DNA of 64,000 nucleotides from Geosiphon pyriformis uo1 (GCA_016748015.1 JAAOMT010000436.1:1634828-1698827), one strand, 5' to 3'; positions 1-64,000 are shown, counted from the stretch's first letter. Made by a program: numbers and translations. Notes: a model not told the origin generated them from the sequence alone.

Positions 1-1258
1 TTACCATCTAATTCTTCTGGATCAAACTCAAATCTGCCAAGAACCCATCCGATGAAACAACCATTTCCTATAAGTTACAATCTTGAAGCTTTTTTTCGTC
101 AAATGGCGACGTTTGCTAATATGGCCTATTGCTGCCCTAATAATGGGGTGGGAAAGTTTGTTACGCGAGGTGATGTAAAAGGTATTAATTGAATGTTTAA
201 AGATTTATTTCTAACTAGAGATCATACAATCCAAATCTTTCTAACAAAAAAATAATTTTCATCTAAAAATTAAACCCTATAGCTGACGTAATATTAGATC
301 AAAAAGAGAATTTTATTGTGGCAATTTTCAAAGGACCACTACTATCTAAATCACAATGGGAAAAACGTGAAATTGTGATGGTTCCATATAACGTATTGGG
401 GAAACCAAAAAATTCTCTTATACGTGTAGACAAGATATGGTATGAAGATGTGATGTCAATGCGTTCTGAAATGTTTACAAAAATAGAAAGGGGAGTTCGT
501 TTGACACCTGAGAGACGTAGGTTATTGTTTGTCGGACATGGTGTTGGTGGTGGTAGGTCTTTTTAAATGTAACAAAAATTTTTGTAATATTGCGAAATCT
601 CAAATAATTTTTGATTTTAGAATAATAAAACTTTTTTTTTCAGCATATGCGGCAATAGCTGGCCTTACCTGGCTAATTGAAAGGGATATTGACCGTAACT
701 ATCGATCGACAAAAGGAGATAAATTGGACATTTTCACAAAAGTAATTACCTTTGGTGCACCTCGGTTTGGAAATGTTTGGCTGGCCCGTCTTATCAATAA
801 ATATAATGGAACTTTTGTAAGATTCACTTTTTTCAATGATCCGACACCCCTTTTTCCTCCGATTAAAAGTGGCAATGATATTTTATCACATCATGAAACG
901 GAATTGTGGATTCCAATGGATAATTGTGACTGCTCAAAAATATGGCTATGTGAAGGGTTTTTTAAGAAGTCAACTTTTGATGAAACAGCTTCTAGTAAAA
1001 AAGAAGGTTTAGACGATAATCCCTTTCCAGAGGATATATTTTTTCCCTATGGTTACGAAGCGGGTGAAAATAAGGTGAATTATCTGTTTTATTTTAAGAA
1101 CGTTCTAATTTGAAAAATTTAACTAAAAATTTTCAAACTACTTTTAGGAATGTAGCTCAGGTCAATCGATTGCCAATGTCCCTCCAAATTTTTTACATAC
1201 AGGACCTTATTTTGATATTGTAATGAATGATTGTTCCATGTTTGATTTTGGTTTTTAA
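1..1258 (+). CDS. Lipase class 3-like protein, Ser-less (copy 1); 5' end outside window
   Basis: Exons <1-181, 283-552, 644-1074, 1148-1258 joined by GT-AG introns give an open frame. Motifs: AYC, FKGP, FVGHGVGG|AY, TFGAPRFGN, NDPTP, HHETELWI, CDC, ECSSGQS..LHTGPYF..C. Confidence 0.88.
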
Positions 1259-2808
1259 AGCAATTTTTAAATATAAATATATTTCAGGCCAGTCCTAAAT
1301 GTTGGGCAAGAAAAATTACTGTAATTTCACTAAAAAATTAGTTTCTCAAGAAATTTCAAAATGAACTTAAGTAAAAGATAGATTTGAAATAAAATTTTTC
1401 AAAAAAACTTATTAGTTTTGAGAATATATTCAAAAGACGGTCCCACAATATTTTAGGGGAAAATTTAATATGAAAAGAGTATAGAAATCTCTTGGACTAA
1501 TATGTATTTCTATCAATTAACAGAATTCGTAACTTTTTATGTGGACATAATTTTAAAAGTTTTAAAGAATATCGCTAATCCAAGAGATATTCTACTGATA
1601 TTGTCGCTTCATAAAAGAATTACATGAATTGAATTTAGAAATTTTTTAATAAAATAGATTAGTCTACATGCTAATTTTTTGAATATAAAATTTTTGTTTA
1701 AAATTTATTTTAGAAAAAATTGAATTCAACTGAGAATTTTTTTTAAAATATTGGAAGCCTTAATAGTTCTTTGAAATTAAGCTTGGGAGACCTTTAGAGG
1801 TTTTATTGCTTTTAGTTATACAATCGACTCATTAAACCCATATTTATTAACATTTTTTATTCTATTCTAGCGAATACCTGTAAAGTATTTTATTTTATTA
1901 AACTCTCTCTAAATAATAGTTTTGACAAGAGAATAAATTCCGTAATGAAAACCTACCCGCTTTACTTTCTCAATGTCTATTAGAAAAAGAAAATTTCTGT
2001 GACTTAAAACTCTAAAAACGTTTATTTGCGTGATTTTTGGTATGTCATTTAGTCTAAACCTGTCTAACGGATTTGGTCCATGAGTTTTTTTGGGGGAACC
2101 TCATCTTCATGTGTTATTTTTCTTAAAAGCTACATAAAATTTCACAACCAAAGTTGATCCGTTTCTCATGTAAATGAGTTTTTGTGAAAACTTTGCTGCC
2201 CAATACATGTACATGTATCTCCAAAAAATTCATTATCTTCGAAACTCTTGACGAATTTACTATTATTATTATTATTATTTTTAGTATTACAAGATTTTCA
2301 AAACCAGCTATCACAATCTAAGCCAAGATTTTTGTTCTGTGACACGAAATATCTCATTTTTATTTTATTTAGATCAGAAATTATCCAATTTATATTTATA
2401 GCTTTTAGATTAATACATATTCTTAATTTTAAATTAAAAATTTTGAATTTTATAAAACATATACTGTCAAAAAGCAATTGCTTTTAAACCCATTTAAATG
2501 ACCATTACACTTCAACTAATACATAGAATTAAATGAAAATTATTTTCATTTGAAAGAAAAGAAAATCAAAAACTTTTTTTTGAATATTTTAAATAAAATA
2601 ATTATTGAACATTTCTCTTTTTAATCTTTGATTATGTAAATTTAAAAAATTTCTCAATAAACTCATTACAAAAAAATTAGGTTTATGTAAAAATTATTAT
2701 TTAATTTTTTTTAGTACAAAAAAAATTGGTTTATAATTTTATATCAATATTAAATTGTATATAAAAATAACTTAAAAGCTGTTTTATTCCAAAAAATTAA
2801 TAAATATT

Positions 2809-2851
<43 letters not shown>

Positions 2852-3729
2852 TCTTTTTTTTTAACTAATTTTAATTAAAAAAAAATTAAAACAGAATTAT
2901 TTGGAATTTTATTATTATATTATATAAAATTATTTATTTAATTAATTAATTAATTAATTAATTAAACATATTTTTTATTGTAATTTACAATTTTATTCAT
3001 TATTTTTTAATCAAAATATTTTTATAAATAAATTTTACCTTTACTATAGAGAGAATGTAATACATCATATAATCTATCCTTTTTTAAAAAATATCTTTTC
3101 TTGTTAGATTTTTATCTTGGTAAAAACATAACATTAAATAGAATAAGCTTGGTCTTTATGAAAAAGAGATTATAGTTGATAAATTATTTTAACCAAGTGT
3201 ATCGTATGATTGTGTCTAAAAATGAATAAGATCGTTAATTTCATTTCCTTCTTATTTTTAAAAAATAGGGACTGGTTTTTTTACTCATTAAACAATTAAA
3301 AAGTTGTAATCCAAGATCGGAGCTAGTTTTTTTAAAAAGAGGGGTAAAATAATATTTAATTTTTTTATTACTGATCGACTCTTGCATTCCAATGTCATCA
3401 GAGTCAACGCATATTGTTCAATAAAAAAAAAAAAATTTGTTTTGGGGTATTATTGCGTGTTCTATGATTCTATTGAGTTTCGAGGATTTTTCGAATTTTA
3501 GTTTTCGATACATTTACAAATTATAAGTTAAGAGATGGTAGATACAAAAGCACTTGGGGAAAACCGTCGATTTGCTGATAAGATTTGTTATCAACGATAA
3601 CCTCCATCGATCAGCGGAATTACCCCTTGCCCGCACATAATCTTTAAAAATTATCTTTTTAATCCGTATTAAATTTTACTTTTAGTAATCCCAATGTTCA
3701 TAATGATCTCCCGAGAACAGAATTTTAGA

Positions 3730-5345
3730 TTATTCCGCACAGATTCCCATCATGTGTTGAAAATATGGGCCGTTATGTGGTGCTGCACTTACAGAAAGTT
3801 TTGGTGTGTCGTTATCTTGAGATGAACCTGTGGATGAATATTGATTATTGCAATTCTAATTGCAAAAGTGAAGACGCAAGATTAATTTTGAGATATATTA
3901 AAAATAATTACAATTGAAATAAATAAATAAAAAAAAACGGTTAACATACTGGATTCTCATCAATAATATAATGAGTTTCTCCTTGAATCGATTCTTCATG
4001 ATACTCTCCAATACACTCAAAAACAAGCGGTGCCTCACATTCACAATATGGCATTATCCAAAACTCAGTACCAACATGCTTAAATAATCTTTGATGATTT
4101 GGAGGCATTTGGACGACGTAATCATTTGCGTAGGTAATTCTAAAGACATTCAAAAACAGATCCACATGTTCGGCAAAAAATTTGTTTCCTATCCGGGGCA
4201 TGCCGTAAGTATATACTTTTACGTTCCAATTATCAATGCCGATCCCTCGTTGTTCTTGTATGAATAGGCCCAATAAAACAGCATATACTAAAGAAAAAAA
4301 TCATACTTCAAAAAAAAGCTGAATGCTGATTTTCGATAAAAATTTTTAAAAAAATTCCTTACCACCACCGATATCATGACCAGTTATTCGAAATTCGTGT
4401 ATTTTATGCGTATGTGCGAGTATTGAAAGTTGCCTGATTATATGCCATCTTGTTTTTTGTATGTTGCTGAAAAAAATTCCAATAACTTTTGCGTTTTTGA
4501 CCTCTTCATATTGTACCATGTCGAATTTACTTAGGTACCATTTATGCTCATCAAATGGATTTCCTTTTATGTACACTATTACTTCGGTTGAGGTTTCGCT
4601 TCTATCTACGAAAGTCTCAACTTGATATTGATAGATAAATAAAATCATTAATAAATATATTGTCATTTCAAGAGTAATTGACAGAACATTAAATTTATAA
4701 AGTTCTTTTTTGATAAATACAATAAATTCCTTCGGCAACTTTTCCTCTACTCTCTCCGAGACAATAAGCTTTTTCAGCAAAACGAGCATATTTTTCGAAT
4801 GGCATTAATAAATGTGGATATGTCACTAAAGTTTTATGGCTTTGATCATAAGTCTCGTAACCCATTGATAGTAAGTTTTTTGAGCTGAGAGAGTTTCTTT
4901 CAGCTAAATTATTCTTTGGTATCGAAATTGATCTTTTAGTTTTTCGCCTGTCAAAACTTTTGTCCAAGGAAGCAATAGATGTCGAAATAATAATATCTCC
5001 ATTAACATTTAAAGTGCTTAGGGTATTATGAAGATTTTTTTCATGATTAAGGTTAGAATTTGGTAACTGAAATGTCTTTGTATATTGGTTTTCAAAAATA
5101 AGATGAGAATTTTTAAACCGCATTAAGAAGTTAACATTTTGAAATCTGAAACCTGAAAGAAAAGTTATTGTCAAGATAAAAGTCAATATTGATAACAGAA
5201 CGGCTCTTTTTTGAATTGGGTTTAATGATGACCATTTAGAAATGAGGATTATTGCAAATTGATTATTTTTAAATGATGATGATGATGATGATGATGATGA
5301 AGGGAGAAAAAGATGATTCATGTGAAAATTATTTGATCGTGGCAT
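3730..5345 (-). CDS. Lipase class 3-like protein with Asp at the nucleophile position (copy 2)
   Basis: Exons 5345-4721, 4620-4363, 4287-3950, 3855-3730. N-terminal hydrophobic anchor (AVLLSILTFILTITFL), then AYC, ITGHDIGG|VY, TYGMPRIGN, NDYVVQMPP, HVGTEFWI, CEC, PHNGPYF. Confidence 0.87.
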
Positions 5346-7451: not shown

Positions 7452-9041
7452 TTAACTAAATGTACTACAATCCCCCATAGTGATCCCAAAATATGGGCCA
7501 ATATGAAAATAATTTGGGGGAATATGATCAATAGATTGCCCAGCGTTACATTCCTAAAATATTGAATTCAAAAATTTTTAAAGATTAATGAATAATAAAT
7601 TAAATTAAATTAAATTATTAACATTTTATCAACCTGATTTTCACCAGCTTCTATTCCAAATGGAAAAAAAGGATCATCTGGGAATGGATTTTCGTCATTA
7701 ATCCCTTTATCATTTCTGGTTTCATTTTTTAAAAATCCATCACAATAAAAAACTTCATAATTTTGAATTTTGTCTTTCACGGAATCATTATAATTATCGG
7801 ATTTTAAACATGAACAATCTTCAAAATCGAACCAAATTTCCAATTCATGATGCGATAAAATATCTTTCCCAGATGTCACTTTTGGGAAATGTGGCATTGC
7901 ATCGTTCGTATGCGTTATTCTAGCTGTAGAAGTGAATTTATTTAAAAGACGAGCAAACCCAACGTTTCCAATTCTCGGTTGACCAAATGTTATAATTTTT
8001 GTTGGAATTCGAGGTAAGATTGGACCGAAAGGAAATAAAGATGTATCTTTCTCATATAACATTGCCCATAAGAGGCCAGAAATTGCTGCATATGCTGTAA
8101 TATAATTAGATTAAGAAAATTTTATTATTTAAAATAAAAGTGATGAAAAAGATAAATTATCTTTTAAATATAAGTACCCACCACCTCCAATACCATGCCC
8201 AACAAAAAATATTCCTTGAATTTGATTGTTTTTTCTAATTCCAGAAACAATGCTCGAAAATAATGCATTCCTCATTTTTTGTACATGTTCATACCATTCC
8301 CGTTCAACCTTGATCAATAAATTTGCTTTTTTACTTTTGATTGGAGTGAAAGGCACTAAGTTCGTTTCCCTTTTTTCCAAATGTGCTTTTGTAAGCTCCG
8401 CTCCTTTAAACATTGCTACTATAACGTTCCCATCTTGTACGTAAATTACTTCGGCTAAAATTTTTATTGGTTAGTTTACTGTATTGTGATATAACGATTT
8501 TGAAGAGGAAAGTTGTATCTTTCAATTTTTCATTAGCATTGGTAACAGCTAATTTGATATGTATAACTTTAATACCAAATTATACCAATACATCTTAAAA
8601 ATAAAAATAAAAAAAGTATAAATTGCGCAATTTCTGATTACCTCTCACATCGTCTCGCTTCACAAATTTCCCAATTCCATTATCCGGATAACAATAAGCT
8701 AAATTAGAGTATCCAGCCATGCGCATAAAAAATGTGTTTAATTTCAAACTTTTTATATCAAGTTTTCTTTTTGGTGGATATCTTGAAAAATTATTTTGAT
8801 GAAAAGATCGTTTCAAATTCAAAGAATTTTTATTATATAAATTATTTTGAGAAAGTCTTGAAAAGTTTGGGTATGAGTGTGAGATCGTTGAGATAATAGA
8901 TATTAAAGAACATATTAATATCCATGATATTAAAAAATATAAAAAAATTAATTGAGTTGGAAAGATTTTATAAATAGGTGAAATTTTTGAAATCTGAAAG
9001 AATGGTCTCTTTTTTACCACTCTAAGCTTCTTTTGATTCAT
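7452..9041 (-). CDS. Lipase class 3-like protein, Ser-less (copy 3); close paralog of copy 1
   Basis: Exons 9041-8642, 8454-8182, 8094-7634, 7553-7452. TM segment, AYC, FVGHGIGG|AY, TFGQPRIGN, NDAMP, CSC, FHIGPYF. Shares the NPFP(E/D)DxFFP(Y/F)GxEAGEN insert with copy 1. Confidence 0.88.
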
Positions 9042-12000
9042 TGTTGAAAATGTAAGATTTCGATTTGTTAATATTGGACTTATTATCGAGTTTTGTTGAT
9101 TTTAATTACTGGCAATGATATCATGTGATCCTGAAATCGAGGAGCTGATAATGTAATTACTTTTTTGTTTGGTTAAGTCTAATTTCCACATTTCTATCTT
9201 TTTTATATTATGAGCTTATCTTTTATTATTTTGTTAATTTTTTTCTTTTCTCCCTAATAATTAGATAAATTTTAACCATCTTGTTTTATGTTTTTACTCC
9301 TAAAAAATTGACATATTTTCAACTTTGCATTTAATTTAGAATTCATCAAAGGTTCATAGTGAAAAGATAACTACTTAGAGACGTCTTAATTAAATATGCT
9401 ATTTTTATTACTTATTCATAATGGTATCATTATTTCTATGCCAATTTTCTCAAGTTATAAATTAAAAATTTATTTCCCGTTTTTCTTAACAATTTACATA
9501 GATTCAAGCCTCTAAAAACTTGAGAGCAATATAAATTTAAAATAGAAAACTATTTTAATAGCTTGTTTAGAGTGAGATATAAGATAAAGTCGAAGCAAAA
9601 TTTCTGATAACTTGTCAAAAAAATTTGTATTTTTTTGTTGATCTCATCAAACTTATTAGTATCAATAAGTACTAATTAGACCCTAAAGCAGTTTTAGATG
9701 ATGAAACTTAGATAATTAATTGCCAAAAAACCTCTGTTAAAAAGAGACGCAAGCAAATTTTACGTTAGAGTGAAACAAAAGATAGGGATCTCTTATCTTT
9801 TTACTTTCTATATTTGCTTAATTATGCAAAAATTAAAACAAACTTGATCATAATAAAAAGTCAAATTTGATTCCTTGTTTTTTCCATGCGTATAGGATAT
9901 GCATTTCATATAAAAATCAAAAAACATTTGGTTAGTAGTTATCATAAATGATCATCCCCAAAGTCGAAGTTTAAAATTATTAATCTACTTTGTTTTCCTA
10001 GCAAAAAATTATTTGTTTTAAAAGTTGTTTGAGTGAAAATAAATTAAACAAAAAGATAAAAGATAATCATGGTTTATGAGAGACCAGTTAGTAATTAACA
10101 AACAATAATCATGGGTTCAATTTTCTAATTTTTTAAAAATTCCATTTTTGGTGGTGGTTTCAACAAAAAAAATTTATTAGAAAAAATAAAAATAAAAAAT
10201 CTAAACATCAGGCATTAAACCATAAAAGAATATTTAAAGAATTATTTTTACTTTAATAATCTTTGATTTCTTTGTTGATTTAAAAAAGGAAATTTGTGTT
10301 CAACTTTAAAATTTTTATTATAGGCTCATATTATAATGAATAGATCATATTTTTGTAAAAAAAAAGATCTATATTAATTGAAATCTAATTTAGGTCTACA
10401 AGTAAAAGTTAAAATATATCTTTAAAATTATAAGTTTGAATTGCAAGATTGATTTGAGCTTGTTATTGAAAAATAACCATTTTTATGATTGTTTGAATGA
10501 AGATTATTTGAAAAAGTGAATTTTTTACTAAAAATTTAGAATATTAAATGGAAGTTTTACATATTGTTAAAAACTAAGTAAACCAAACTTTATAAAAAAA
10601 ATTTAATATACATAAAAAAACATTTATAATTTTTAATTGATTTTTAATTAATTTCAAAATTATAAACTTGTTATTTTTAGAAATTTTTATATATCTATTT
10701 TACTACAATTAATCAAAATTACAAATTTGCTATTGATCGTTTATTGTAAAAAAAAAATTCAAATTTAAGCCAATAATTAAATTAATGACAGGATTGAAAC
10801 AAATTTTTAAAATAAAAAAATTAACATAATATATAACATATATTATTTAGTATAATTTTTATTAATAAATGGCAATTTTTAACCAAAAAATATATAGTTC
10901 CTTGTTATTATAAATTATATTAAATTAATTTTTATAATTATTTAATAAAATAAGATCAAAAAATATGTAATTTTTTTAAGAAAAAAATTAATTCAAAAAT
11001 ATAAATTTTAATTAACAAAAAATTTGAAAATATATTTTTAAAATTGTAATCGTTAAAAATTAAAATATACAATTAATATAATCAAAAAAAATACAATAAA
11101 TAAGAAAATTTCTAATTTTATGTAAAAATAAAATAAATTGTGTTTTTATATAATAATTATTATATTTTATTATGTTATTCAATTTAAAACTGTTATTTGT
11201 TACCACAAATGAAAAATTTAATTTAAAATATAAATTATAATTTACATGTTATAAGTTTTTAATTCATTTTTTGTATAAATAATTAATTAAATATTATTTT
11301 TAAAAATAATATAATTTTCAGTTGAGTTTACTTTTAAAGTTTTTTCTTAAATAATTTTTAAAAACTTAAATTTAAAATTATATATATATATAAGTTTGTG
11401 TCATTATTATAATAATCAAATAACTAAAAAAAAATTGTGAATTTTGACTTGAATTTAAGTATTAGCATACATTACTATTTTTTATTAGATTAAAATTTTT
11501 TTTGAAAAAATAATATTTAAATATTTATTTCATATATATGTTAATATATTGTAAATTAAAATTATTTAAAGTAATTTTTAAAAATAAAAAAAATTAAATA
11601 CAAAGTTAATTATCAAATCAATAATTAGGTTAATAGCTAATTCTATAAAAAATTTGTTGTGAAATTTTGTTTTAATAAATTATATTCATCTGATGCTTAA
11701 TTATCACTCGAGTTCAAATTTGTATTATATATATATGTAATTCGTTAAAATTTATTTTTTTGACACTTATTTTTTATATTTCAATTTCAATTTTATTTAA
11801 AATATAAATGTGCATTTTATATATGTTTTTAATAAAATTAAAATTTTATTTAATCACAATAATAATAATAATAATAATAATAACAAAAAATTCAATCAAT
11901 TTATTAGAAAAAAAAACATGATTTTGAATTTTTTGATAAAAATATGAATATTTAATATAAAATTGGAAAGTTATTCAAATAATTATAGTAATATCTGATA

Positions 12001-12163: not shown

Positions 12164-13556
12164 TCAACTATAATATTCTTTACAATCACCCATTGTAACA
12201 CCAAAATAAGGGCCATTATGAAAGAGGCCATTTGAAACCTTTGTGATTGATTGTCCTGCATTGCACTCCTAAGAGAAACCATTTTTAGTTTTTATCCGTG
12301 AAAACCATTTAAGAAATATATGTAGTTAGAAGCAAAAGCTAACCATATTCGTTTCATATGTTCCTTCCTTCTGATTCGAATAATTATTACAATCCCAGTA
12401 AGAATAGAAATCTTCGGGACATTCACAATTTTCAGATGGCTGAAGCCAGATTTCAGCACCAGAATGTTTCCACTTGATAGAATCATCAGGAAATTGTGGG
12501 ACGTAATCATTTCCATGGGTAACACGCAGATATAAAAGTGTTCGATCTATTAATGCACTAAGCTGGCTGTTTCCAATTTTTGGAGCTCCAAAAGTCAAAA
12601 TCATTGACCATATTTTATCAAGACCTATCTCAGGCCAAAGATTTTTTTGCATGACTTTAGATGCTTCATAATGCCATAGAAGGCCAGTGATTAAGGCATA
12701 TGCTATTTTTGAAAAAAGAAATATTCGTAATTTAAAATTTTACTTTTAGACTCAAGAGCAGAAGTATAGTATTTATTAACCTCCACCAATCCCATGTCCG
12801 ATGAAATAAATAGATTTAATGTTGGAATATGCGTGCAGATTATTTCGAATATCTTGTATTAAATTGGAAAATATGGATTCTATATCCTGCAACCACTGCT
12901 GATTAACATGAACATATTCGTCAGGAAACGCAATTCCATCCACTCTCAATGTTACTTGTGCTTGATTTATAGAAGACCATTGGGCTTTAATCAATTTCTA
13001 AAAAATTTAATCAAAAATCTGATTATCTTTACCATGATTTGTATTTTAAAACACGTTATTCACGAAAGTTAAAAATAATTACTGGTCCGCCTAACAACAC
13101 ACACAATATGTCGTGATTAGGTTGCGGTAAAACTTTGGCTGAAGACCGAAAATTTAGGTTAATATGAAGTAAAACTGATTTTGAATTCAACTCAATCTAT
13201 TAAGTTTAAACTCTTTTTTTCAAACCAATGAAAGGTCTCTCGTTTGGGAAACAATATAAAGCATTTGCGAAAGGTGTAAAGATTTCAATAAAAGTCAAGA
13301 TTCCTATTCGAGGTATCATTTTTGTTTTGACATATGATTTTGAGCGTTTAATAATTTGAATCATGTGTAAAGAAATTCCCAGTGAATTCTCCCAAACCGC
13401 CGAGGTTATGAAATTATAATTTATATTCTGTTTTTGAGAAATATTAAATCTTAAAGTTTCTCTGAAGGCTATCGAACTTTTAAGTTTCTCTAGAGGAGAA
13501 AAGTAAAAAGCTGATAATATAAAAATTAAGATTAAGATTTGATTTCTTCTCAACAT
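12164..13556 (-). CDS. Lipase class 3-like protein, Ser-less (copy 4)
   Basis: Five exons (ATG 13556; short exon 13138-13083; exon from 12997; last exon 12268-12164). Signal/anchor ILILIFILSAFYF, FIGHGIGG|AY, TFGAPKIGN, NDYVP, CEC, ECNAGQS..FHNGPYF. Exact start codon uncertain. Confidence 0.85.
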
Positions 13557-21841: not shown

Positions 21842-21880
<39 letters not shown>

Positions 21881-22739: not shown

Positions 22740-24070
22740 TTTCAACAGTTTTATCGTTTCGATCTTTCTTGCAACTACCCATCTTTATTCCAAATAAGGG
22801 CCGTGATTGAAGAAAATTTTTGGTCTATTTGTCAATGGTTGCCCTGCATTGCATTCCTAAAAGATATTTTCAATTAAAGGTTATATAAAATCTTACTAAC
22901 GAGATAAAAAATTAAAACTAACCAAATTTTCTTCATTAATTGCTCCTTCAATCCATCTTTGTTGTTGATCCTCCGGGATAGAAGAACTATTACAATTCCA
23001 ATATAAATCTTCATAATTGGAAGAATCACAATTACTAGATAACCCAATCCAAGTTTCAATACCAAAATGCTTCCATCCCATTGAAGCCGGAGGAAAGTGT
23101 GGGACATGATCATTTCCGTGGGTGATACGGTGATGGTTAACCAATGAGTTTATCAAATCACTGAATTGGCTGGTTCCAACTCTAGAAGCTCCAAAGTAAT
23201 AGTGGTATGTCCCATTTAATGAAGATTAATCTCTGGCCAAAGATTATGATGTATAATTCTACTTTTTTCGAACCCCCACAGAATGCTAATAATTAATGCA
23301 CATGCTAATATTTTCAAAAGCTAAAATTTGAGAATTATTTTTTTGAAAGGATAGGAGCAAAAAATGACATTGATCCAACCTTCACCAACAACATGCCCAA
23401 CGAAAAAAATGTCTTTGATATTGGGGTTGATACTCAAAACAGTGTGTATATCATGAGCAGATCTCTAAAAAATGTAACTGAAGCCTTCACTATCCTTTGT
23501 TAAAATCTATTTTTCTTAAAAATTGAAAACAATTACTTGCACTACAAAAGAAATAACCAAACCTTTATAACCAGAAGATGACTCAAGCCATGAAAATTGT
23601 GCTGAAAAAGCAAGATTCTCAAAAATGTATTTTTAGAAATAAATTCAAATATTTTAAAAGTTTTATCTTTAAAGCATTTACGTGGTTCAGGGCCAGGTGA
23701 AACAGTTTCATCGCGGCCCAAGCAATAACCAGTATTTACGAGAAATGCAAGCTTTTGATAAAGCAGTAAATATTCTATGCCAGGTTTTATTCGCCTTTTG
23801 GTATGCAATGGTGAACGCTTTGTAATTTGATTTTTTTGTAAAGGAACTTTAAATTGATTTCTCCAAATCGATAGGATAGGAAAAGTATGGTTTATATCCT
23901 TTTTTTGTAGAAACTAAGAACCTTTGAATATCTTGAAAGCATATGCTACTTTTCAAATTTTTGTGTGCTAAAAAGTAAAATCCTAATGAGATAAATATTG
24001 AGATAACTGTTGCTTATTTTTTCGAAATATAAAATTTTTTTGTAAGTAGATTTGTAAAAAAACCCATAAT
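22740..24070 (-). pseudogene. Lipase class 3-like pseudogene (copy 5)
   Basis: GYC, FVGHVVGE, THGNDHVPHFP, HFGIETWI and ECNAGQP are recognisable. Frameshifts near TFGA (~23195) and GPYF (~22793), and exon 3 is partly deleted. Ends approximate. Confidence 0.8.
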
Positions 24071-27947: not shown

Positions 27948-27952
<5 letters not shown>

Positions 27953-33300: not shown

Positions 33301-33410
33301 CTTGATTTTTGTGGCGATCCAAAAAATTCTCTCCCCGAACAACAATATTTAAAACCGTCAAACTGTCCAACCATCTCTCGCCTCATCAGGGTTCCATAAA
33401 AGAAACCACC

Positions 33411-41731: not shown

Positions 41732-43204
41732 TCAATTGTTCGTCATTGATGGACCGCAATTGCCCATTTCAATGTTAAAATAAGGACCATTATGAAAAAA
41801 GCTCTCTGAAACTTCGTTTATTGATTGACCAGCATTACACATCTAAAATCAAAGAAAGCCAACTTTTTAATGCATTTTTCAGAGGAATTTCTGAAAGCTC
41901 TTGATAAAACATAATTGATTACTGACCATATTTTCTTCGGAATAAATCCCATTAACCCATAAGTTTCTTTGAGTCTGTGAAAGTAAAGAATTATTGCAAT
42001 CCCAATACACGTTTCGTTCATCAGAACAATCACAATCACCCAATGGCTCAATCCAAATTTCAACACCAGAATGTTTCCATCCCGTTGAAGCTGAAGGAAA
42101 ATGTGGTACATGATCATTTCCATGGGTGAAGCGGAAAATTTTGATTGCGTTGTTTAAAAGAGAACTGAGTTGACGATTTCCAACTCTCGGAGCTCCAAAA
42201 GTAAAAATTTCTTGTGCGATTCCTGTTAAATTAATATCAGGCCAAAATTTACCTATTTCGATTATTTTTCTTTCAAGTGCCCACCTAAATCCAGCTATAT
42301 AAGCATATGCTTTTACATTTAAATAGGTGTTTGATATTAGAAATATGATAGATCTTATTTAGAACCTTAAGAACAGAAAATATTTGGACAACCAACCTCC
42401 ACCAAGAGCATGCCCGACAAAAGCAATTTCGTATGTTTTAGTTGCTTTTGGGAAGCGACTTAAAAAATCATAAATAGTTTCTTTTAAAATAGGAAATAAC
42501 ATTTCCACATCTTCTAATAATTGTGTTTCAACACGAGCTTCTGGGTCAAAACCGGGGTAACCTTCAAAACGAAATTGTACTTGATTTGAATTTCTAGAAG
42601 CCCATTGTTTTTTCGTTAATTTCTAATAGGAAAAAAATAAAAATGATGATCATGAAAAGATTTAAAAGTTTAAAAGTAGTCAGATAATTACTGGGCCTGC
42701 AAACATTATGACTAGAGCGCTATAATCAAGTGAATATGAGTAAAATTCAGCATGTACTAAGAAGAGAATTTTAAGGTTATGTTAAGTCAATTTTTTTAAG
42801 AAAAAATTTTCAACTTTCCTCTAAAATTATGAACCTTTTATTTGTAAACCTGGCACTTTTGAACCAACGTTATTAGAATTGTTGCAGTCAAGAAAATTTA
42901 TTAAATATGCAATATTCGACATAATCACTAAAAGAGGGGCCCGAGATGGAATTTCAATCTTGGTATGTGTTGACGAGCGTTCTTGAATTTGATTGATTTT
43001 TGAATGAATGTTAGCTTCATTTATCCAATTAATAATAATAGGAGAGGTGTAGTTTATTTCCGGGTTTTTATATTTTTGAATTACTTCTGAGCCTATCCAC
43101 CTACTGCTGGGCCTTTCAAGCATAAAAAAATAAAAAATTGATGCCGTAAAAATTGCACCATTAATAATCTTGACTTTCCTAGGAATATTGGATAAAGAAC
43201 CCAT
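41732..43204 (-). CDS. Lipase class 3-like protein, Ser->Ala (copy 7)
   Basis: Five exons (exon 4 from 42309 is open but has no start codon, so it is absent from the ORF track; last exon 41842-41732). FAGP, FVGHALGG|AY, TFGAPRVGN, NDHVP, CDC, FHNGPYF. Confidence 0.86.
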
Positions 43205-45986: not shown

Positions 45987-47373
45987 TCAACCGTAATATT
46001 CTTTACAATCACCCATTATAACACCGAAATAAGGGCCATTATGGAAGAGGTCATCTGAAACCTCTGTGATTGATTGTCCTGCATTGCACTCCTAAGAGAA
46101 AACATTTTTAGCATTTATTCGTTAAACTGTCCAAGAAATATATGTAGTTAGAAGTAAAAGCTAACCATATTCGTTTCATATGTTCGTTCCTCTGGATTCG
46201 ATAAATTATTACAATCCCAGTAAAAATAGGAATCTTCGGAACAATCACAATTTTCAGATGGCTGAAGCCAGATTTCAACACCAGAATGTTTCCAATTCAT
46301 AGAATCATCAGGAAAGTGTGGGACGTGATCATTTCCGTAAGTAACACGCAGATGTGTAGTTAATCGATCTATTAATGCACTAAGCTTGTTGTTTCCAATT
46401 TTTGGAGCTCCAAAAGTTAAAATCATTGAACGTATTTTATCAAGACCTATCCCAGGCCAAAGATTTTTTTGCCAAACTCTAGATTGTTCAAATTTCCATA
46501 GAAGGCCAGTGATTAAGGCGTATGCTGTTTTTGAAAAAAATCAAATATTTGTAATTTAAAATTTACTTTTAGACTGAAGAGCAGAAACACAGTATTTATC
46601 AACCTCCACCAATTCCATGTCCGATGAAATAAATTGATTTAATGTTGGAGTGTAGACGCAGATTATTTCGAATATCTTGCATTAAATGGAAAAATATGGA
46701 TTCTATATCCTGCAACAACTGCTGATTAACATGAACAGATTTGTCAGGTAAATCAATTCCATTCGCTCTCAATGTTACTTGTGCTTGATTTATAGAAAAC
46801 CATTGTGCTTTAGTCAATTTCTAAAAAAAATTATCAAATATCTGATTATCTTTACAAAAATTTGAGTTTTAAAACATATTATTTAAAGAAGTTAAAAATA
46901 ATTACTGTTCCGCCTAACAATACACACAATATGTCGTAATTGGGTATCGGTAAAACTTTAGCTGAAGACCGAAAATTTAGGTTAATATAAAGTAAAACTG
47001 ATTTTGCATTCAACTCAATCTATCAAATTTAAATTTTTTTCAAACCAATGGATCCCCCTTTTCGCAAACAATATATAACATTTGCGAAAGGTGTATAGAG
47101 TTCAATATGAGTTAAGATTCCTGTTCGAGGTGTTATTTTTGTTTTGTTATAGAATAATGAGCGCTTAATAACTTGATTGATGTATGAAGTAACTTCTGGT
47201 GAATTCTCCCAAACCGTTGAGGTTATAAAATTATAATTTACATTATGTTTTTGAGAAATATTAAATCTTAAAAGTTCTTTGAAGGCTACTGAACTTTTAA
47301 GTTTCTCTAGAGGAGAAAAGTACAAAGCTGATAATATGAGAATCAAGATTAAGATTTTATTTCTTCTCGACAT
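45987..47373 (-). CDS. Lipase class 3-like protein, Ser-less (copy 8); close paralog of copies 4 and 10
   Basis: Same five-exon structure as copy 4 (last exon 46091-45987). FIGHGIGG|AY, TFGAPKIGN, NDHVP, CDC, FHNGPYF. Confidence 0.86.
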
Positions 47374-48059
47374 ATTCAATTTATTTATATTTGGATTTGA
47401 AGAAAAATTTATTGAGGGCTTGCTTACGCAAATTTATAGAATGAGGCCTATCTTGTATATAATAAAAATTCGATTATACTTTTATCATATTATTTTCAAG
47501 CATCAAATGATTTTAGGCAAATATTTTTCGCAAAAAATACACAAATTTATTATAGTATCAATTTTATTCGTCTATCATCTCTATAAATTCAATTATGGAA
47601 TAGTAAATATTTTGTTTTCTCCCTGTATATTCTTCCGAAAATTAAATTTCTCGCGAGAATATTAAAAAATTATGTCCAATAATAATAAAATCTATAGCGT
47701 CGAAATCACTTTTAATAATTAAAAATATCTTTTAAGAAGATTTAAACTATAATAATTAATTATAAAGATTATTAATATTAAGACCCTTGGAATAATTTTC
47801 GGTATAAGAAAAAATTTAATAACCCATTTCTACTTAGCTACATCAAAAAAAAATTAGTTTATTTTTAACATGTCTTTATAATTTACAATTTTTATTTAAT
47901 TCCGGTACTTATATAAATTATGAAAAATGCGAAATTTCTTTATTCGAAGGCCAATTAATTTTTTTGCGCCTTTAGAACTTAAAGTCTTCTCTTTAAAATC
48001 TACTAATTAAGTTTTTTATTTTATGAAAATATAGTATATAGCTTAATAATTTTTTCCAA

Positions 48060-49570
48060 GTCTTTTCTAAACTCTAAAAATCTTTTACTATCACAAGAAC
48101 CCGATCCTTTGAAATTTAACTCAAATTTAATGATTTTAGCCTCAAATTATCAAAATAACAACTTACCTTCCACTCTTCTAAATCAAGTTATCCTGCGGAA
48201 ACGAAATTACATACAACCAATATTAACAAGTCAACCGGAAAACTCGAAGACAAAGTTTTTAGTTACAAATCAAAACTTATTACAAGAATTTCAACGATTT
48301 GCTTATTATGCCCAGATCGCTTATTGCCTTGGAGAAGAGCATTCATTTGGTGATGGTAGTCAAATATACGGTTGTAATTTTCGTTTTGCTTTTAGAATTT
48401 CTAAAGTTCAAATTTAGCTGAATGCATATTTATTTTTAATTAAGTTCAAATAATAATCTGAAATTTTACTTTATAATTTGCTTTACATGCTAGTTTAGCT
48501 CGAGCTATTCCAGATTCTACCACAAAACAAATTGTGGTTATATTTCGTGGAAATAAAGATCTATCTATGTTACAATGGCATAAAAGAAATAATGGGATGG
48601 TTAGATACGCGAACGTTTTTTTGGAAGGTAAGTGGAATGTATTTATAAGAATATTAAAAATTTTTAGTTTATACTTTATATTGAATTGCTTTAATTTTTA
48701 CTGGAATGAATATATTTCGAACTTATGTTACAAACAAATCTGCCAAATTGTTAATATTTAAGATAAAATTCTTCTTTTTTAAAGAGTTGATTTCTCGTTT
48801 TACTCAAATTTTCAACGTGCAGAAGAAAAACTGTTAAATATGATTTGGGAAGTAGTTGATCAATATCCTTATTATCCTGTTATTCTAACTGGGCACGGAA
48901 TAGGTGGTGGTGAGTAAGTTTATTATCTGTATAATTGAAAAAAATTACGAGATTTAAAATCATTGTCAGAATTTATTCCATTTCAAATTGTAAACTGAAT
49001 CAAGTTTTAAATTTGGTATACGCGACCTTTACGGCGCTCTCATTAAAAAAAGATACTTGGTATCATGACTCAATTGAGCCTTTGATTTTATTTACCTATG
49101 GTCAACCCCGGATCGGAGATCGTCAATTTTCTATTCATGTAGAAAAAGAACTTCGATTCATCTATCGAATCACATATTTAGATGATATTGTATCTCAAAT
49201 GCCTCCGGTTCAACTTGGATTTCGGCATAATCATTGCGAGTATTGGGTCTCGCCAAGTTGTGGATGTACTGAAGAAGATAATCCAGATGTTTATTGTGTT
49301 TAGGGACGAGGAGTCCGGATAAACGTAAAGGTGTAGGGATCTTATCTGAACCCCAGGTATTCTTTATGATAGTTTATATTAAAATCTGAATTAGTCTGAT
49401 AATTTTATTTAAGGGATTCGTCGATAAATTGCATTTGGCTATTTTTATATCTCAAGGAATGTAATGCTGCGTTTCATACGTCAATTCCAAATTTGCGAAT
49501 CATTGGGGCATTTTTTAATCGATTGATGGGCAATGTCCATCGTTATCATCTAATCTCCCAATTGTGAATG
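48060..49570 (+). pseudogene. Lipase class 3-like pseudogene (copy 9)
   Basis: IAYC, IFRGN, LTGHGIGG, TYGQPRIGD, DDIVSQMPP, HNHCEYW and ECNA are recognisable. No signal/anchor exon, acceptor reads GG at ~49015, premature TAG at 49301, last exon frameshifted. Confidence 0.78.
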
Positions 49571-54831: not shown

Positions 54832-55584
54832 TCAACCATAATATTCTTTACAATCACCCATTGTAACACCGAAATAAGGGCCATTATGGAAGAGGTCATC
54901 TGAAACCTCTGTGATTGATTGTCCTGCATTGCACTCCTAAGAGAAAATATATTTAGCTTTCATTCGTTAAACTATTCAAAAAATATATGTAGTTAGAAGT
55001 AAAGGCAAACCATATTCGTTTCATATGTTCGTTCCTCTGGATTCGATATATTATTACAATCCCAGTAAAAATAGGGATCTTCGGGACATTCACAATTTTC
55101 AGATGGCTGAAGCCAGATTTCAACACCAGAATGTTTCCAATTCATAGAATCATCAGGAAAGTGCGGGACGTGATCATTTCCGTGAGTAACACGCAGATGT
55201 GTAGTTATTTGATCTATTAATGTACTAAGCTTGTTGTTTCCAATTTTTGGAGCTCCAAAAGTTAAAATCATTGAACGTATTTTATCAAGACCTATCCCAG
55301 GCCAAAGATTTTTTTGCCAAACTCTAGATTGTTCAAATTTCCATAGAAGGCCAGTGATTAAGGCGTATGCTGTTTTTGAAAAAAATCAAATATTTGTAAT
55401 TTAAAATTTACTTTTAGACTGAAGAGCAGAAACACAGTATTTATCAACCTCCACCAATTCCATGTCCGATGAAATAAATTGATTTAATGTTGGAGTGTAG
55501 ACGCAGATTATTTCGAATATCTTGCATTAAATGGAAAAATATGGATTCTATATCCTGCAACAACTGCTGATTAACATGAACAGA
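54832..55584 (-). CDS. Lipase class 3-like protein, Ser-less (copy 10); 5' part lies in an assembly gap
   Basis: Near-identical to copy 8. FIGHGIGG|AY, TFGAPKIGN, NDHVP, CEC; last exon 54936-54832. Confidence 0.82.
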
Positions 55585-56428
55585 NNNNNNNNNNNNNNNN
55601 NNNNNNNNNNNNNNNNNNNNNNNNNNNNNNNNNNNNNNNNNNNNNNNNNNNNNNNNNNNNNNNNNNNNNNNNNNNNNNNNNNNNNNNNNNNNNNNNNNNN
55701 NNNNNNNNNNNNNNNNNNNNNNNNNNNNNNNNNNNNNNNNNNNNNNNNNNNNNNNNNNNNNNNNNNNNNNNNNNNNNNNNNNNNNNNNNNNNNNNNNNNN
55801 NNNNNNNNNNNNNNNNNNNNNNNNNNNNNNNNNNNNNNNNNNNNNNNNNNNNNNNNNNNNNNNNNNNNNNNNNNNNNNNNNNNNNNNNNNNNNNNNNNNN
55901 NNNNNNNNNNNNNNNNNNNNNNNNNNNNNNNNNNNNNNNNNNNNNNNNNNNNNNNNNNNNNNNNNNNNNNNNNNNNNNNNNNNNNNNNNNNNNNNNNNNN
56001 NNNNNNNNNNNNNNNNNNNNNNNNNNNNNNNNNNNNNNNNNNNNNNNNNNNNNNNNNNNNNNNNNNNNNNNNNNNNNNNNNNNNNNNNNNNNNNNNNNNN
56101 NNNNNNNNNNNNNNNNNNNNNNNNNNNNNNNNNNNNNNNNNNNNNNNNNNNNNNNNNNNNNNNNNNNNNNNNNNNNNNNNNNNNNNNNNNNNNNNNNNNN
56201 NNNNNNNNNNNNNNNNNNNNNNNNNNNNNNNNNNNNNNNNNNNNNNNNNNNNNNNNNNNNNNNNNNNNNNNNNNNNNNNNNNNNNNNNNNNNNNNNNNNN
56301 NNNNNNNNNNNNNNNNNNNNNNNNNNNNNNNNNNNNNNNNNNNNNNNNNNNNNNNNNNNNNNNNNNNNNNNNNNNNNNNNNNNNNNNNNNNNNNNNNNNN
56401 NNNNNNNNNNNNNNNNNNNNNNNNNNNN
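55585..56428. other. Assembly gap
   Basis: Run of N. Confidence 0.99.
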
Positions 56429-59081: not shown

Positions 59082-60128
59082 TTATACTTCATCAACAATT
59101 TTCCATCTCTTAACTTCTCGCCATGCATGACGATCTTCCAAAGTGCTACACGATTTTAAATTCTCAAAAACCACCAGATCCCATCCAGCTCTCATTGGAT
59201 CTTCAGGGTCATTATCTTTAACTTCATCAAACACAATCTCATCTCTGGCCATCTTTAATAAATTTTGCATAGCTTCACCAGTCAATCGTTCTCTTACTCC
59301 TTCATCGCTCGCATATCGATTACCACAATATGCCAAAGAGATATGATTGATACTCTTTTTTCGAATATTTGTCTGTAAATCCTTGTTTGATGATTGAAAT
59401 CTGGGATCATTTTTGGGAATAGATGAGATGTATGTTGCGATATCGTGCAAGGTTTGGCAAGCTTCTAATGGTATCAAGAGACTTTGTAATGAATCAGAGG
59501 ATGAAGATGATCGCGAGGACTCTGATGATAGAGACGATGAACGACGATGAATCTTGTATTGTTCACGTTTTTGGAAGAGTGGTGATTGTAATGAGGTAAA
59601 GCTAGCAGTTGATGATCCTGATGATGAACAGGATAGAGCAGGCGATGCAGGTCTTGATGAAGATCGAGATGAAACAGCTGATGAAGGGTAGTGTGTAGAA
59701 CTTTCCGGAGTGCTTAAAAGAATTCCTTCGACACGGGGTGGTGTAATGTCTTGACCATGTTCACCAAGAAAAGTATCAATTTCTTCAACTAAAACATCCA
59801 ACTTTTCTTGAGCGGTCAACAGTGGTCGATTGACAGATAATTTTACATTACCAATATTTTCATCAGAGTTATCACCGCTAATGTTTTTGTCAACATCCAA
59901 GTTTACTATTTGGGGTTCATCCTCGTAATCATTGTAAAGATTAAAGAATCCAGTCATAGCGACGTGTGGATGATATTGATGTGCTTCATTGGGACCAAAG
60001 AGCTTATAAGTTTGAGCGAAAAATCTATCGATGCTTTGATAAAATCTAGAATCGGCTGACGGTTCGAGGTAAACGACACATCGAATTTTTTTGGAATCAG
60101 CAGGTTTTTGAAAGGATGGGTAAGACAT
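59082..60128 (-). CDS. 2H-phosphoesterase-like protein with Ser-rich insertion
   Basis: Intronless 348-aa ORF with two His motifs, NEAHQYHPHVAMTGFF and INHISLAY. The first resembles the 2H domain of UBASH3/Sts-type proteins. Confidence 0.7.
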   Translation of the reverse strand: MSYPSFQKPADSKKIRCVVYLEPSADSRFYQSIDRFFAQTYKLFGPNEAHQYHPHVAMTGFFNLYNDYEDEPQIVNLDVDKNISGDNSDENIGNVKLSVNRPLLTAQEKLDVLVEEIDTFLGEHGQDITPPRVEGILLSTPESSTHYPSSAVSSRSSSRPASPALSCSSSGSSTASFTSLQSPLFQKREQYKIHRRSSSLSSESSRSSSSSDSLQSLLIPLEACQTLHDIATYISSIPKNDPRFQSSNKDLQTNIRKKSINHISLAYCGNRYASDEGVRERLTGEAMQNLLKMARDEIVFDEVKDNDPEDPMRAGWDLVVFENLKSCSTLEDRHAWREVKRWKIVDEV

Positions 60129-61142: not shown

Positions 61143-61183
<41 letters not shown>

Positions 61184-62010
61184 NNNNNNNNNNNNNNNNN
61201 NNNNNNNNNNNNNNNNNNNNNNNNNNNNNNNNNNNNNNNNNNNNNNNNNNNNNNNNNNNNNNNNNNNNNNNNNNNNNNNNNNNNNNNNNNNNNNNNNNNN
61301 NNNNNNNNNNNNNNNNNNNNNNNNNNNNNNNNNNNNNNNNNNNNNNNNNNNNNNNNNNNNNNNNNNNNNNNNNNNNNNNNNNNNNNNNNNNNNNNNNNNN
61401 NNNNNNNNNNNNNNNNNNNNNNNNNNNNNNNNNNNNNNNNNNNNNNNNNNNNNNNNNNNNNNNNNNNNNNNNNNNNNNNNNNNNNNNNNNNNNNNNNNNN
61501 NNNNNNNNNNNNNNNNNNNNNNNNNNNNNNNNNNNNNNNNNNNNNNNNNNNNNNNNNNNNNNNNNNNNNNNNNNNNNNNNNNNNNNNNNNNNNNNNNNNN
61601 NNNNNNNNNNNNNNNNNNNNNNNNNNNNNNNNNNNNNNNNNNNNNNNNNNNNNNNNNNNNNNNNNNNNNNNNNNNNNNNNNNNNNNNNNNNNNNNNNNNN
61701 NNNNNNNNNNNNNNNNNNNNNNNNNNNNNNNNNNNNNNNNNNNNNNNNNNNNNNNNNNNNNNNNNNNNNNNNNNNNNNNNNNNNNNNNNNNNNNNNNNNN
61801 NNNNNNNNNNNNNNNNNNNNNNNNNNNNNNNNNNNNNNNNNNNNNNNNNNNNNNNNNNNNNNNNNNNNNNNNNNNNNNNNNNNNNNNNNNNNNNNNNNNN
61901 NNNNNNNNNNNNNNNNNNNNNNNNNNNNNNNNNNNNNNNNNNNNNNNNNNNNNNNNNNNNNNNNNNNNNNNNNNNNNNNNNNNNNNNNNNNNNNNNNNNN
62001 NNNNNNNNNN
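61184..62010. other. Assembly gap preceded by poly-T
   Basis: Run of N after ~39 T. Confidence 0.99.
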
Positions 62011-63554
62011 TTTAAATTTTTAAGTGTTATAATAAGATTATTGAAACTCAATTCACTATTTTTATCAAGATCTAATGTCACTTTATCAGATTAGTCCTTT
62101 CATCCTCGGGCTGCACCGACGTAATAGTTCCTAACAAACACTCCATAGACTTTTTTAGAAAACTCCATTTAGTAATCATTATCTTAATTCTTGATTAATA
62201 AAAAGCATTTGACTGATTAGCTCTTTCTAACAATCAAAGAAAGAAAAGGAATATTTGAGGAATTGAAGTTGGATTTCATTATTATACAACTTCGTAAACT
62301 TCATCATTAAAAAGGAAATTGTGATAGAACAAAAGATTAATTCATAAATTTTCGAACTTATAAGTCAGTTATTTACTACTGCATTTTTTTCTCGAAAATA
62401 TTTTCCATTTCAAATTTTAAAAGTTTACGAATTTTCCTGAAAGATTCAAAGCTGAAGTTTATCATTGCCTTATTATTCATATTGAAATTGCATTAAATTT
62501 TCATAGCTTTAAACGAGTTAGCTACTCATATATTCTAACCCATTTCTCTTTAGTAAGTGCGTCAAGGGTACAAAAGACTAGATAACGTGATGCTATTAAT
62601 AATTTGAATGTTGGGTTTATTGATTTATTATATCTACTGGAATGAGAGGAGTTCAGAGAGTAATAGGATCATTTATAATAATTATTTATAATAATTATTA
62701 TTATTCTAAATATAATTTAATGAAAATTTTTAATTAACTATTATGAGTTAGCTAATTGACTCAAGACATAGTGTAAAACATATCTAACTAAAAGTTAATT
62801 ACAAGTTATGTATGGAATTATTTCCCTTTTCCAAAGTCAAACAATCACAAAATGACTTGGATCGTACAGTTTATTAAAACTTTGAAAAGTTTTTAACATT
62901 AAAAAAATATTAAGCCAATAATATTTATTTAATATATTTTTTGAAACTAAAAAACTAAAAAAATCTGCGAAAAAAAATTTAAAATTCAATATACTTAAAA
63001 ATTAGTTATAACCATTTTAAAAACTAAAAAATTATTTTAGTATGATGAATAAAATTAATTTAATTTAAACAAGTTTATATATTAATTTTTTATTGTCAAA
63101 CTATTGCTTGAAATTGAAAAAATAATTAAAAATAATTTATATCTTTTTGTAAAATTTTATTATATAAATGTGTCACTTCAATACTAAAGTATGGAAGATT
63201 AAAAAACCATTATAAGAAATCTTGTGAAATGAGTTTTTAATTTATTCAAATAATGAATTTTATTTGCATTTAGATTGAGTTTGTACATTCTAAAGGCTTA
63301 AACTTGTTTAATCTACTGATACCGGTTTTCAATCAAAATTCAAACTAAAAAATCATTGTATTGAAATCTCTAAAGAGAGCAAGATTTCTTCGGAATTAAG
63401 ATAATCCAAACTTCCCATTTTATATATATTCTAGTAGGGAACTTTTATTTTAAATATTTAGTCGTGTGTGTGAGATAGGGTAACTTATTATCGAAATTAC
63501 AAATTCTTAAAAATCTTTATTTATTTGGANNNNNNNNNNNNNNNNNNNNTCTTA

Positions 63555-64000
63555 CCCTTGAAAAGTTAAAAACTTTTTACATACCATTGCAAAAGACTCA
63601 GCCGGATATTTAGTCATCCTGTATTCTCTTGAAGCCCATTTGAGCAGCCTTATTGGAGGCCCACGAAATGAAATTACTAGTTTTTTATTTTCGAAATCTG
63701 GAACCGCTCGAGCTTAAAATTTCAAGTAAATAAAGTTAATGTGTTCTTTTAAAAATACAGGAAATATATATATATATATATATGAATATCTGCTGAATGC
63801 TACAATTTAAAAAAATAAAAATTAATATTGTTACCATATATACTTTTCCCAAATCTGTATTCATCGTCAAAGCAATAAGCTGATTGGGCCCACTTTGCGT
63901 ATTGTTCAAATATCTTCAAAGTAATAGACGTGTTAGGAATAATTTTTTTGGTATTAGTTTCCTGCTGAAGTACGCTGTTTGCAATTTTTAAAGATTTAGA
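63555..64000 (-). CDS. Lipase class 3-like gene, partial (copy 11); closest to copy 9
   Basis: Exons read ...FEQYAKWAQSAYCFDDEYRFGKSIY | ARAVPDFENKKLVISFRGPPIRLLKWASRE... The 5' end is beyond the window. The 3' exons are not found past the gap at 63530-63549. Confidence 0.72.

Follow-up and report, generated by a model that had tools for sequence, protein, structure and literature searches.

Lipase-like proteins without a catalytic serine: a tandem array and a large, diversifying gene family in Geosiphon pyriformis

What becomes of a lipase fold once the residue that attacks the substrate has gone, and is such a fold maintained when it occurs in many neighboring copies? The question is raised by a 64,000-nucleotide stretch of the Geosiphon pyriformis genome (contig C669:1634828-1698827), which we call the window and by which we mean the whole stretch that was analyzed. 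The window is AT-rich (26% G+C) and contains exactly 11 paralogous loci of the class 3 lipase family (Pfam: Lipase_3, PF01764), numbered here c1 to c11. This count comes from tblastn with our own gene models, and clustering of stop-free segments agrees with it. Exon pieces from the window reach 36.5–39.6 bits against PF01764, for which the cut-off is 22 bits, and the public models of c1, c3, and c6 are recorded as having this domain. The reading that we favor, with modest confidence, is that these loci encode non-catalytic, secreted, ligand-binding proteins of a diversifying Geosiphon family that evolves by birth and death.

Loss of the catalytic serine and of the oxyanion residue

A six-frame motif scan recovers 10 GHxxG[GE] nucleophile elbows in the window, of which none (0/10) bears a serine. 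All ten elbow spellings listed in a first-pass annotation of the window are found where it placed them; its statement that all 11 copies lack the serine holds for the ten readable elbows and does not extend to c11, whose elbow is unreadable because an assembly gap (63530-63549) interrupts the gene before it. The codons at the nucleophile position are GGT, GGA, or GGG, GCT, GAT, and GTT, such that Gly, Asp, Ala, and Val are each one step from GGT. The oxyanion triplets that had been reported are likewise present, except that c8 reads Gly-Gly-Thr (GGT), and both the disappearance of the VHxGF motif and the retention of T[FY]GxP[RK]xG and HxxxExW are borne out.

The same losses characterize the wider family, for which residues were counted in an alignment of 145 domains (137 database representatives and 8 window copies). 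The nucleophile position is occupied by Gly in 105 domains, Ala in 19, Ser in 16, Asp in 3, and Arg and Phe in 1 each. Among the members without the serine, the oxyanion position is Ser or Thr in only 9 of 117 and Pro in 36 of 117, and VHxGF has become V-D-x-x-W (VDxxW). The lid Trp is present in about two thirds and is followed by a family-specific Arg (lid Q/E-W-x-x-R). Given that two independent catalytic elements are gone, the nucleophile serine and the oxyanion residue, we conclude on sequence grounds that the lipase-like copies of the window are not working serine lipases. Normal activity through a relocated serine had been named as an outcome that would speak against a catalytically dead family; among the 40 most conserved columns, we find none in which the Ser-less group, unlike true lipases, has a conserved Ser, Thr, or Cys.

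Retention of the catalytic aspartate and histidine

The other two members of the triad are largely kept. The catalytic Asp is present in 143 of the 145 domains (~99%) and the catalytic His in 101 of the 113 domains that reach the last exon (89%). In the window, both residues are found in all modeled copies that reach the respective exons, save c9, in which the His is replaced by Ile (c5 is outside the modeled set). The RITHTND segment of c3 exon 3 aligns on the RITHTND of Thermomyces lanuginosus lipase, with its Asp at D201, from which we conclude that the catalytic Asp is kept. Ser-bearing Geosiphon paralogs elsewhere in the genome, which have FRGT, VHRGF, and GHSLGG, share with the window copies a phase-1 intron right after GHxxGG and a last exon with the pattern H.GPYFG...C. 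Matching of the last exon to these GHSLGG paralogs identifies the His of FH.GPYFG in the window copies as the catalytic His; the true catalytic His is thus in the last exon (H.GPYFG) and not in HxxxExW. A phmmer search with the c3 elbow exon and the c3 last exon against PDB sequences returned nothing useful.

Six Cys and a set of Gly, Arg, Glu, Thr, and Pro core residues are 90–100% conserved in the family and equally so in true lipases, so much of the conservation reflects constraint on the fold. The least variable blocks surround the three triad positions, and the most variable regions are the lid, the helix after the lid, and the Cys-rich C-terminal insert.

Predicted fold, secretion, and relation to known proteins

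The fold was computed on public protein P0003 (c1), and database searches were run with single exons. AlphaFold2 with a 77-sequence family alignment gives a model of P0003 with a pLDDT of 88.2 and a pTM of 0.89, in which only the Cys-rich insert (residues 220-233) is poorly modeled. The best PDB matches to this model in Foldseek are Aspergillus niger feruloyl esterase A and the lipases of T. lanuginosus and Rhizomucor miehei (TM ~0.6; E-values of 1e-10 to 1e-12 to 2ix9, 5ap9, and 3tgl), in agreement with an R. miehei-type lipase fold, and EDS1, PAD4, and SAG101 match more weakly (TM ~0.4).

The predicted N-termini point outside the cytoplasm. In c1–c3, a hydrophobic 19-mer (Kyte-Doolittle mean 2.25-2.72) follows a basic N-terminus and is in turn followed by a long low-complexity stalk, and the N-termini of c4, c6, c7, and c8 resemble signal peptides. 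In the mature parts there are 6-8 Cys and as many as four N-x-S/T sites. Among the 45 family members with enough N-terminal sequence, 32 (71%) have a [KR]R pair 10-50 residues before an AYC motif, compared with 20% of random 40-residue windows. Together the hydrophobic N-termini, the six conserved Cys, and the dibasic site fit the extracellular location that had been proposed, and we infer that the family proteins are probably secreted and processed by a Kex2-type protease.

The closest known relatives, the class 3 lipases of R. miehei and T. lanuginosus, have in common with the Geosiphon proteins the fold (TM ~0.6 to 3tgl, 1tib, and 5ap9), the GHxxGG elbow, TFGxPRxGN, the Asp in RITHxND, the His in a C-terminal H..YFG loop, the disulfide Cys, the lid Trp, and an N-terminal signal plus pro-region, and the dibasic-ended pro-region of the Geosiphon family is reminiscent of the one that is processed in the Rhizomucor lipase. 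The Geosiphon GHSLGG paralogs have an exon structure identical to that of the Ser-less copies. The Geosiphon family differs from these lipases in the replacement of Ser by Gly, Ala, or others, in the frequent replacement of the oxyanion Ser/Thr by Pro, in VDxxW in place of VHxGF, in its new lid residues (Q/E-W-x-x-R), in its ~290 copies, in its high dN/dS (ratio of nonsynonymous to synonymous substitution rates), and, for some copies, in a membrane anchor and long stalk.

Non-catalytic proteins with the α/β-hydrolase fold are known, including SAG101 of the plant EDS1 family, the neuroligins, and GID1. The Geosiphon proteins would resemble them in a hydrolase fold kept by selection after the loss of catalytic residues; unlike them, the Geosiphon proteins lack an EP or other partner domain, have a predicted location outside the cell instead of in the cytosol, retain the Asp and His, and number in the hundreds within a single species, as paralogs that evolve fast. 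The structural match at rank 23 is 1gt6, the inactive S146A mutant of T. lanuginosus lipase in complex with oleic acid. Its fold is likewise that of a lipase deprived of the nucleophile, yet a fatty acid sits in its cleft, so binding without turnover is physically possible; the mutant differs in having been made in the laboratory and in keeping its oxyanion hole, and we take it as a precedent only and not as evidence that the Geosiphon proteins bind lipid.

Size, distribution, and origin of the family

Genome-wide counts cover the 128.3-Mb, 792-contig assembly. The PF01764 profile yields 783 first-look candidates and 171 scored matches. The census pattern GGNCAYNNNNTNGGNGGNGGT (G-H-x-[hydrophobic]-G-G plus a G|GT donor) occurs 333 times, compared with 2 occurrences of a reversed control pattern, which is well above chance and bears out a very large family. 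Tabulation of the variable codon in the 333 elbows, which had been proposed as a check, gives Gly in 228, Ser in 40 (33 AGY and 7 TCN), and other residues in 65. From these counts, the Ser-less family would comprise roughly 290 genes and the active-type Ser paralogs roughly 40.

A search with c3 exon 3 against 1.84 billion protein representatives returned 288 matches, from the best 150 of which nucleophiles and sources were looked up. The nucleophile in most of these 150 is Gly, Ala, or Asp, and each of the 22 Ser-less representatives whose source was looked up is from Geosiphon (22/22); similarly, 23 of the 24 matches in a search with P0051 (c6) are Geosiphon proteins. No Ser-less relative from outside Geosiphon is present among the 22 looked-up representatives or the 24 P0051 matches, and the non-Geosiphon matches all have GHS (a fly, Panaeolus, Neoconidiobolus, and two metagenome proteins). 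Among the sequences examined, the family thus appears to be Geosiphon-specific. A literature search that did not cover the genome paper (Curr Biol 2021) found no published description of a Ser-less Geosiphon lipase family.

In a FastTree phylogeny of the domains (midpoint root, without support values), the foreign GHSLGG lipases cluster together and the Ser-less proteins form a large radiation in which eight Ser-bearing Geosiphon members are scattered. All eight of these nested members lack RG[ST] and VHxGF (8/8). This distribution suggests a single early loss of the serine, after which the position may have drifted among small residues, Ser included.

Selection on the reading frames

Copies that are only 21-47% identical to one another still have open frames and all six Cys. 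As had been claimed, most copies are open: seven are intact over their full length and one, c5, is decayed. Nei-Gojobori estimates of dN/dS for window pairs are 1.16 for c8 and c10 (which have only 11 differences), 0.89 for c4 and c8, 0.84 for c4 and c10, and 0.30-0.54 for older pairs, in which dS is saturated. A 114-codon core set of 46 copies (37 from other arrays and 9 from the window) gives median dN/dS values of 0.8-1.2 for young pairs (dS < 0.3) and 0.5-0.6 for older pairs, and in old pairs pN is well below pS. The identities and the range of dN/dS (0.5-1.2) bear out the expected fast diversification.

Young copies would pass for neutral by dN/dS alone, so the open-frame test is needed to support their maintenance. 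When the 133 observed substitutions between c4 and c8 were placed in a neutral simulation, both copies remained stop-free in 2 of 10,000 trials (P ~2e-4). The indels of the pair follow the same pattern: four are found in 320 intron nucleotides, compared with a single in-frame codon indel in 1065 coding nucleotides. Beyond the window, the 114-codon core is stop-free in 37 of 40 sampled Gly-elbow loci. The claim of selective maintenance stands as regards the open frames, the indel pattern, and the cores; by the refuting condition that had been named for it, a dN/dS near 1, the youngest pairs look almost neutral. The picture is one in which the reading frame and scaffold are under selection, most other positions change almost freely, and gene death is frequent.

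Organization of the array

Exon models of the copies were derived from conserved GT-AG introns and are given in Table 1 with the assembly gaps.

Table 1. Lipase-like copies and runs of N in the window (positions counted from its first nucleotide; amino acid lengths are those of our models)
Feature	Public model	Span	Strand	Exons	Elbow	Oxyanion triplet	State
c1	G9A89_015072, P0003	1..1258	+	1-181, 283-552, 644-1074, 1148-1258	GHGVGG 534-551(+)	KGP	intact, 427 aa; Asp and His present
c2		3730..5345	-	5345-4721, 4620-4363, 4287-3950, 3855-3730	GHDIGG 4364-4381(-), Asp codon GAT	KGN	intact, 448 aa; intron-1 acceptor uncertain; long stalk, hydrophobic anchor residues 48-66
c3	G9A89_015074, P0001	7452..9041	-	9041-8642, 8454-8182, 8094-7634, 7553-7452	GHGIGG 8183-8200(-)	KGA	intact, 411 aa; anchor residues 32-50
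c4	P0137	12164..13556	-	13556-13226, 13138-13083, 12997-12781, 12702-12344, 12268-12164	GHGIGG 12782-12799(-)	GGP	intact, 355 aa; signal-peptide-like N-terminus
c5		22771..24067	-		GHVVGE 23381-23398(-)		decayed pseudogene
c6	G9A89_015076, P0051	25150..26595	-	26595-26223, 26151-26084, 26013-25797, 25716-25337, 25263-25150	GHALGG 25798-25815(-)	AGP	intact, 383 aa
c7	G9A89_015079, P0163	41732..43204	-	43204-42835, 42756-42692, 42622-42397, 42309-41927, 41842-41732	GHALGG 42398-42415(-)	AGP	intact, 384 aa
c8		45987..47373	-	47373-47046, 46961-46906, 46820-46604, 46524-46166, 46091-45987	GHGIGG 46605-46622(-)	GGT	intact, 354 aa
c9		48007..49567	+	?-48373, 48499-48627, 48787-48909, 49005-49297, 49457-49567	GHGIGG 48891-48908(+)	RGN	divergent subtype; open, start not placed
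c10		54832..55584	-	55584-55449 (gap-cut), 55369-55011, 54936-54832	GHGIGG 55450-55467(-)		3' 200 codons, open, incomplete
gap, 844 N		55585..56428	.				inside c10
gap		61184-62010	.				overlaps no lipase copy
c11		63555..64000	-	64000-63835, 63712-63555		RGP	5' fragment of 108 codons, c9 subtype
gap, 20 N		63530..63549	.				terminates c11

The ATG and signal-anchor of c1 lie ~300 nt upstream of the window start. In the pseudogene c5, stops occur in the signal region and exon 3, and the frame changes inside both exon 1 and exon 3; in addition, the first part of its domain is missing, its last exon is decayed, and one Cys of its CxC is lost. The divergent c9 has lost the last Cys in addition to the triad His (RIIGAFF) and has no in-frame ATG ahead of its hydrophobic segment, such that its start was not placed; this gene may be decaying. 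Copy c8 is 76% identical to c4 and is the twin of c10, whose 5' exons must fall in the gap that cuts it. The flanks of this gap are colinear with c8 (55584 with 46739 at 97% identity over 890 nt, and 56429 with 47742 at 84%), from which ~1002 nt are expected where 844 N are written. There is therefore room in the gap for the missing exons, and nothing speaks against continuity. The fragment c11 is bounded by the window end and the 20-N gap, and tblastn with our own models finds no lipase-like sequence beyond that gap, so the rest of c11 was not found.

The array extends downstream of the window, where a further relative of c4 and c8, c12, is located at positions 1189-2566 of C669:1708828-1718827. 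Three stops interrupt its frame and one Cys has gone, at a divergence similar to that of c4 and c8, which marks it as a young pseudogene. A Ser-bearing GHSLGG lipase gene is found ~5 kb past c12 (C669:1716020), 17 kb downstream of the window, and on the other side, ~30 kb before the window starts, are two more GHS elbows, at C669:1602021 and 1604984. The 10 kb that follow the window (C669:1698828-1708827) are 53% N. They contain an additional GHALGG copy at position 9271 of that piece and, in inverted orientation, two occurrences of the last-exon peptide ECNAGQSIKNVPD (piece positions 3174-3188(+) and 4907-4921(-)), which could represent an inverted duplication or an assembly artefact.

Between lipase copies, the intervals 10001-12000 and 20001-22000 of the window have a G+C content of only 14%. 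A G+C-richer stretch (37-40% at 34-40 kb) contains an uninterrupted open reading frame (ORF) of 1069 codons at 33309-36518 (+), the product of which is of low complexity, rich in Ser, Asn, Lys, Thr, and Pro, and includes a His run and a C-terminal WICLFCEYKLYYG segment. A second ORF of 348 aa, at 59082-60128 (-), has two H-x-[TS]-like motifs (HVAMTG and HISLAY) that are reminiscent of 2H phosphoesterases. No Pfam family was found in either ORF (E <= 0.01) or in the lipase-like N-terminal exons. Long ORFs that span the N runs were rejected as artefacts of the gaps.

Public gene models

NCBI labels the window proteins G9A89_015072, _015074, _015076, and _015079 as "hypothetical protein," contrary to the expectation that automated annotation would call them lipases. 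The public models P0003 (c1), P0001 (c3), P0137 (c4), and P0051 (c6) are 99.7-100% identical to our own over the common part, which confirms the splice sites; those of c1 are the ones of P0003. The public models begin at internal Met codons, omitting N-terminal segments; P0001 additionally lacks the last (His) exon, and P0163 (c7) skips part of exon 3. Such faults recur in the GenBank models of the family, which are often N-terminally short, without the last (His) exon, or missing part of exon 3, and many representatives of 550-1300 aa (e.g., P0002 and P0086) are 2-4 neighboring genes fused. As a consequence, the public proteome will yield inaccurate counts and domain tables.

Proposed non-catalytic binding proteins and the alternatives

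Our preferred interpretation, toward which we lean by a little, is that the family arose from Geosiphon's own secreted Rhizomucor-type (class 3) lipases. Its products would begin with a signal peptide or signal-anchor; next would come a variable pro-region or stalk, in most cases closed by a dibasic (Kex2-type) site, and then a lipase fold braced by disulfides. Loss of the serine, the oxyanion residue, and VHxGF would make the usual acyl-enzyme chemistry impossible, and outside the cell the old lid and active-site cleft would hold a hydrophobic ligand, such as a lipid or fatty acyl group, without turnover. Tandem duplication, rapid replacement of amino acids on a scaffold that stays fixed, and the frequent death of genes would have shaped the family. 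That the proteins do not hydrolyze, that they function by binding, and what kind of ligand they hold are what we infer; as for a lipid being that ligand, or any connection of the family with the Nostoc symbiosis or fatty-acid dependence, we are speculating.

Several points weigh against this interpretation. One would not expect a supposedly dead site to keep its Asp and His, and their retention could reflect residual or altered catalysis; their conservation may, in large part, simply be fold constraint. Visual inspection and simple counts, rather than a trained predictor, underlie the calls of signal peptides and Kex2 sites, and the public models omit the N-terminal segments. Lastly, the young-pair dN/dS of 0.8-1.2 is close to neutral, and exon divergence between c4 and c8 (12.7%) is about equal to intron divergence (11.9%).

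The retained residues could mean that the proteins are still enzymes, in which a His-Asp pair would activate water, or a hydroxyl of the substrate, within the space that the change from Ser to Gly opens, or an Asp would act as the nucleophile in GHD copies such as c2, giving an altered hydrolase or transferase. The near-universal Asp and frequent His at 21-47% identity, the low variability of the blocks around the triad positions, the kept lid Trp, and the Asp at the nucleophile position of c2 and two other members all fit such an activity. We nevertheless consider it unlikely, given that the oxyanion residue is lost and often replaced by Pro, which has no backbone NH, that the nucleophile position drifts among Gly, Ala, Ser, Asp, Val, Arg, and Phe, that the His is replaced in ~11% of members, c9 included, and that the triad columns are conserved in true lipases for reasons of fold, with no new conserved nucleophile in sight among the 40 most conserved columns. 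A role alongside enzymes is also conceivable: pseudoenzymes often regulate active paralogs, and the Ser-less proteins could regulate, compete with, or protect the ~40 active paralogs, or serve as decoys that absorb foreign lipase inhibitors or ligands. The presence of active GHSLGG genes in or beside the arrays, as at the three loci on C669 described above, and the fast diversification, as in an arms race, are in keeping with this idea, which we regard as rather improbable in view of the ~290 dead copies per ~40 active ones and of a conserved part that is the scaffold and not a particular surface.

Divergence among the young copies raises the further prospect that the family is neutral baggage, in which duplicates of a dead gene spread and decay without function in a repeat-rich genome. 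The values of 0.84-1.16 among c4, c8, and c10, the equal exon and intron divergence of c4 and c8, and the pseudogenes c5 and c12 in the array would all be expected under this explanation. It does not account for the stop-free state of c4 and c8 (P ~2e-4 under neutral substitution), for frameshifting indels that are absent from coding sequence and present in introns, for the open frames and six Cys of copies with as little as 21-47% identity, or for the low pN relative to pS in old pairs. We give it very little weight, and pure neutrality is unlikely for the intact copies. Returning to binding proteins, a bolder version of our interpretation holds that the ~290 scaffolds form a hypervariable extracellular recognition repertoire, immune-like or for partner choice, in which every paralog would use its lid and cleft to capture a microbial lipid or glycolipid unlike those of the others, for instance one from the Nostoc cyanobiont or from soil bacteria, and which would have evolved only in the glomeromycotan that houses cyanobacteria. 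This version we put forward as a long shot.

Implications

No fungus other than Geosiphon is known to house cyanobacteria intracellularly, and Geosiphon is, as had been conjectured for the host, one of the fatty-acid-dependent Glomeromycotina. With ~290 genes for probably secreted, fast-evolving lipase look-alikes, this lineage-specific family would rank among the largest fungal pseudoenzyme expansions that we know of. If the proteins do bind lipid, the family bears directly on how Geosiphon senses lipids or acquires them from its partner, and if they form a recognition repertoire, the lipase fold would be a new type of scaffold for such systems. The family also offers a natural experiment on what a lipase fold retains, namely the Asp, the His, the lid Trp, and the disulfides, after its nucleophile has been lost.

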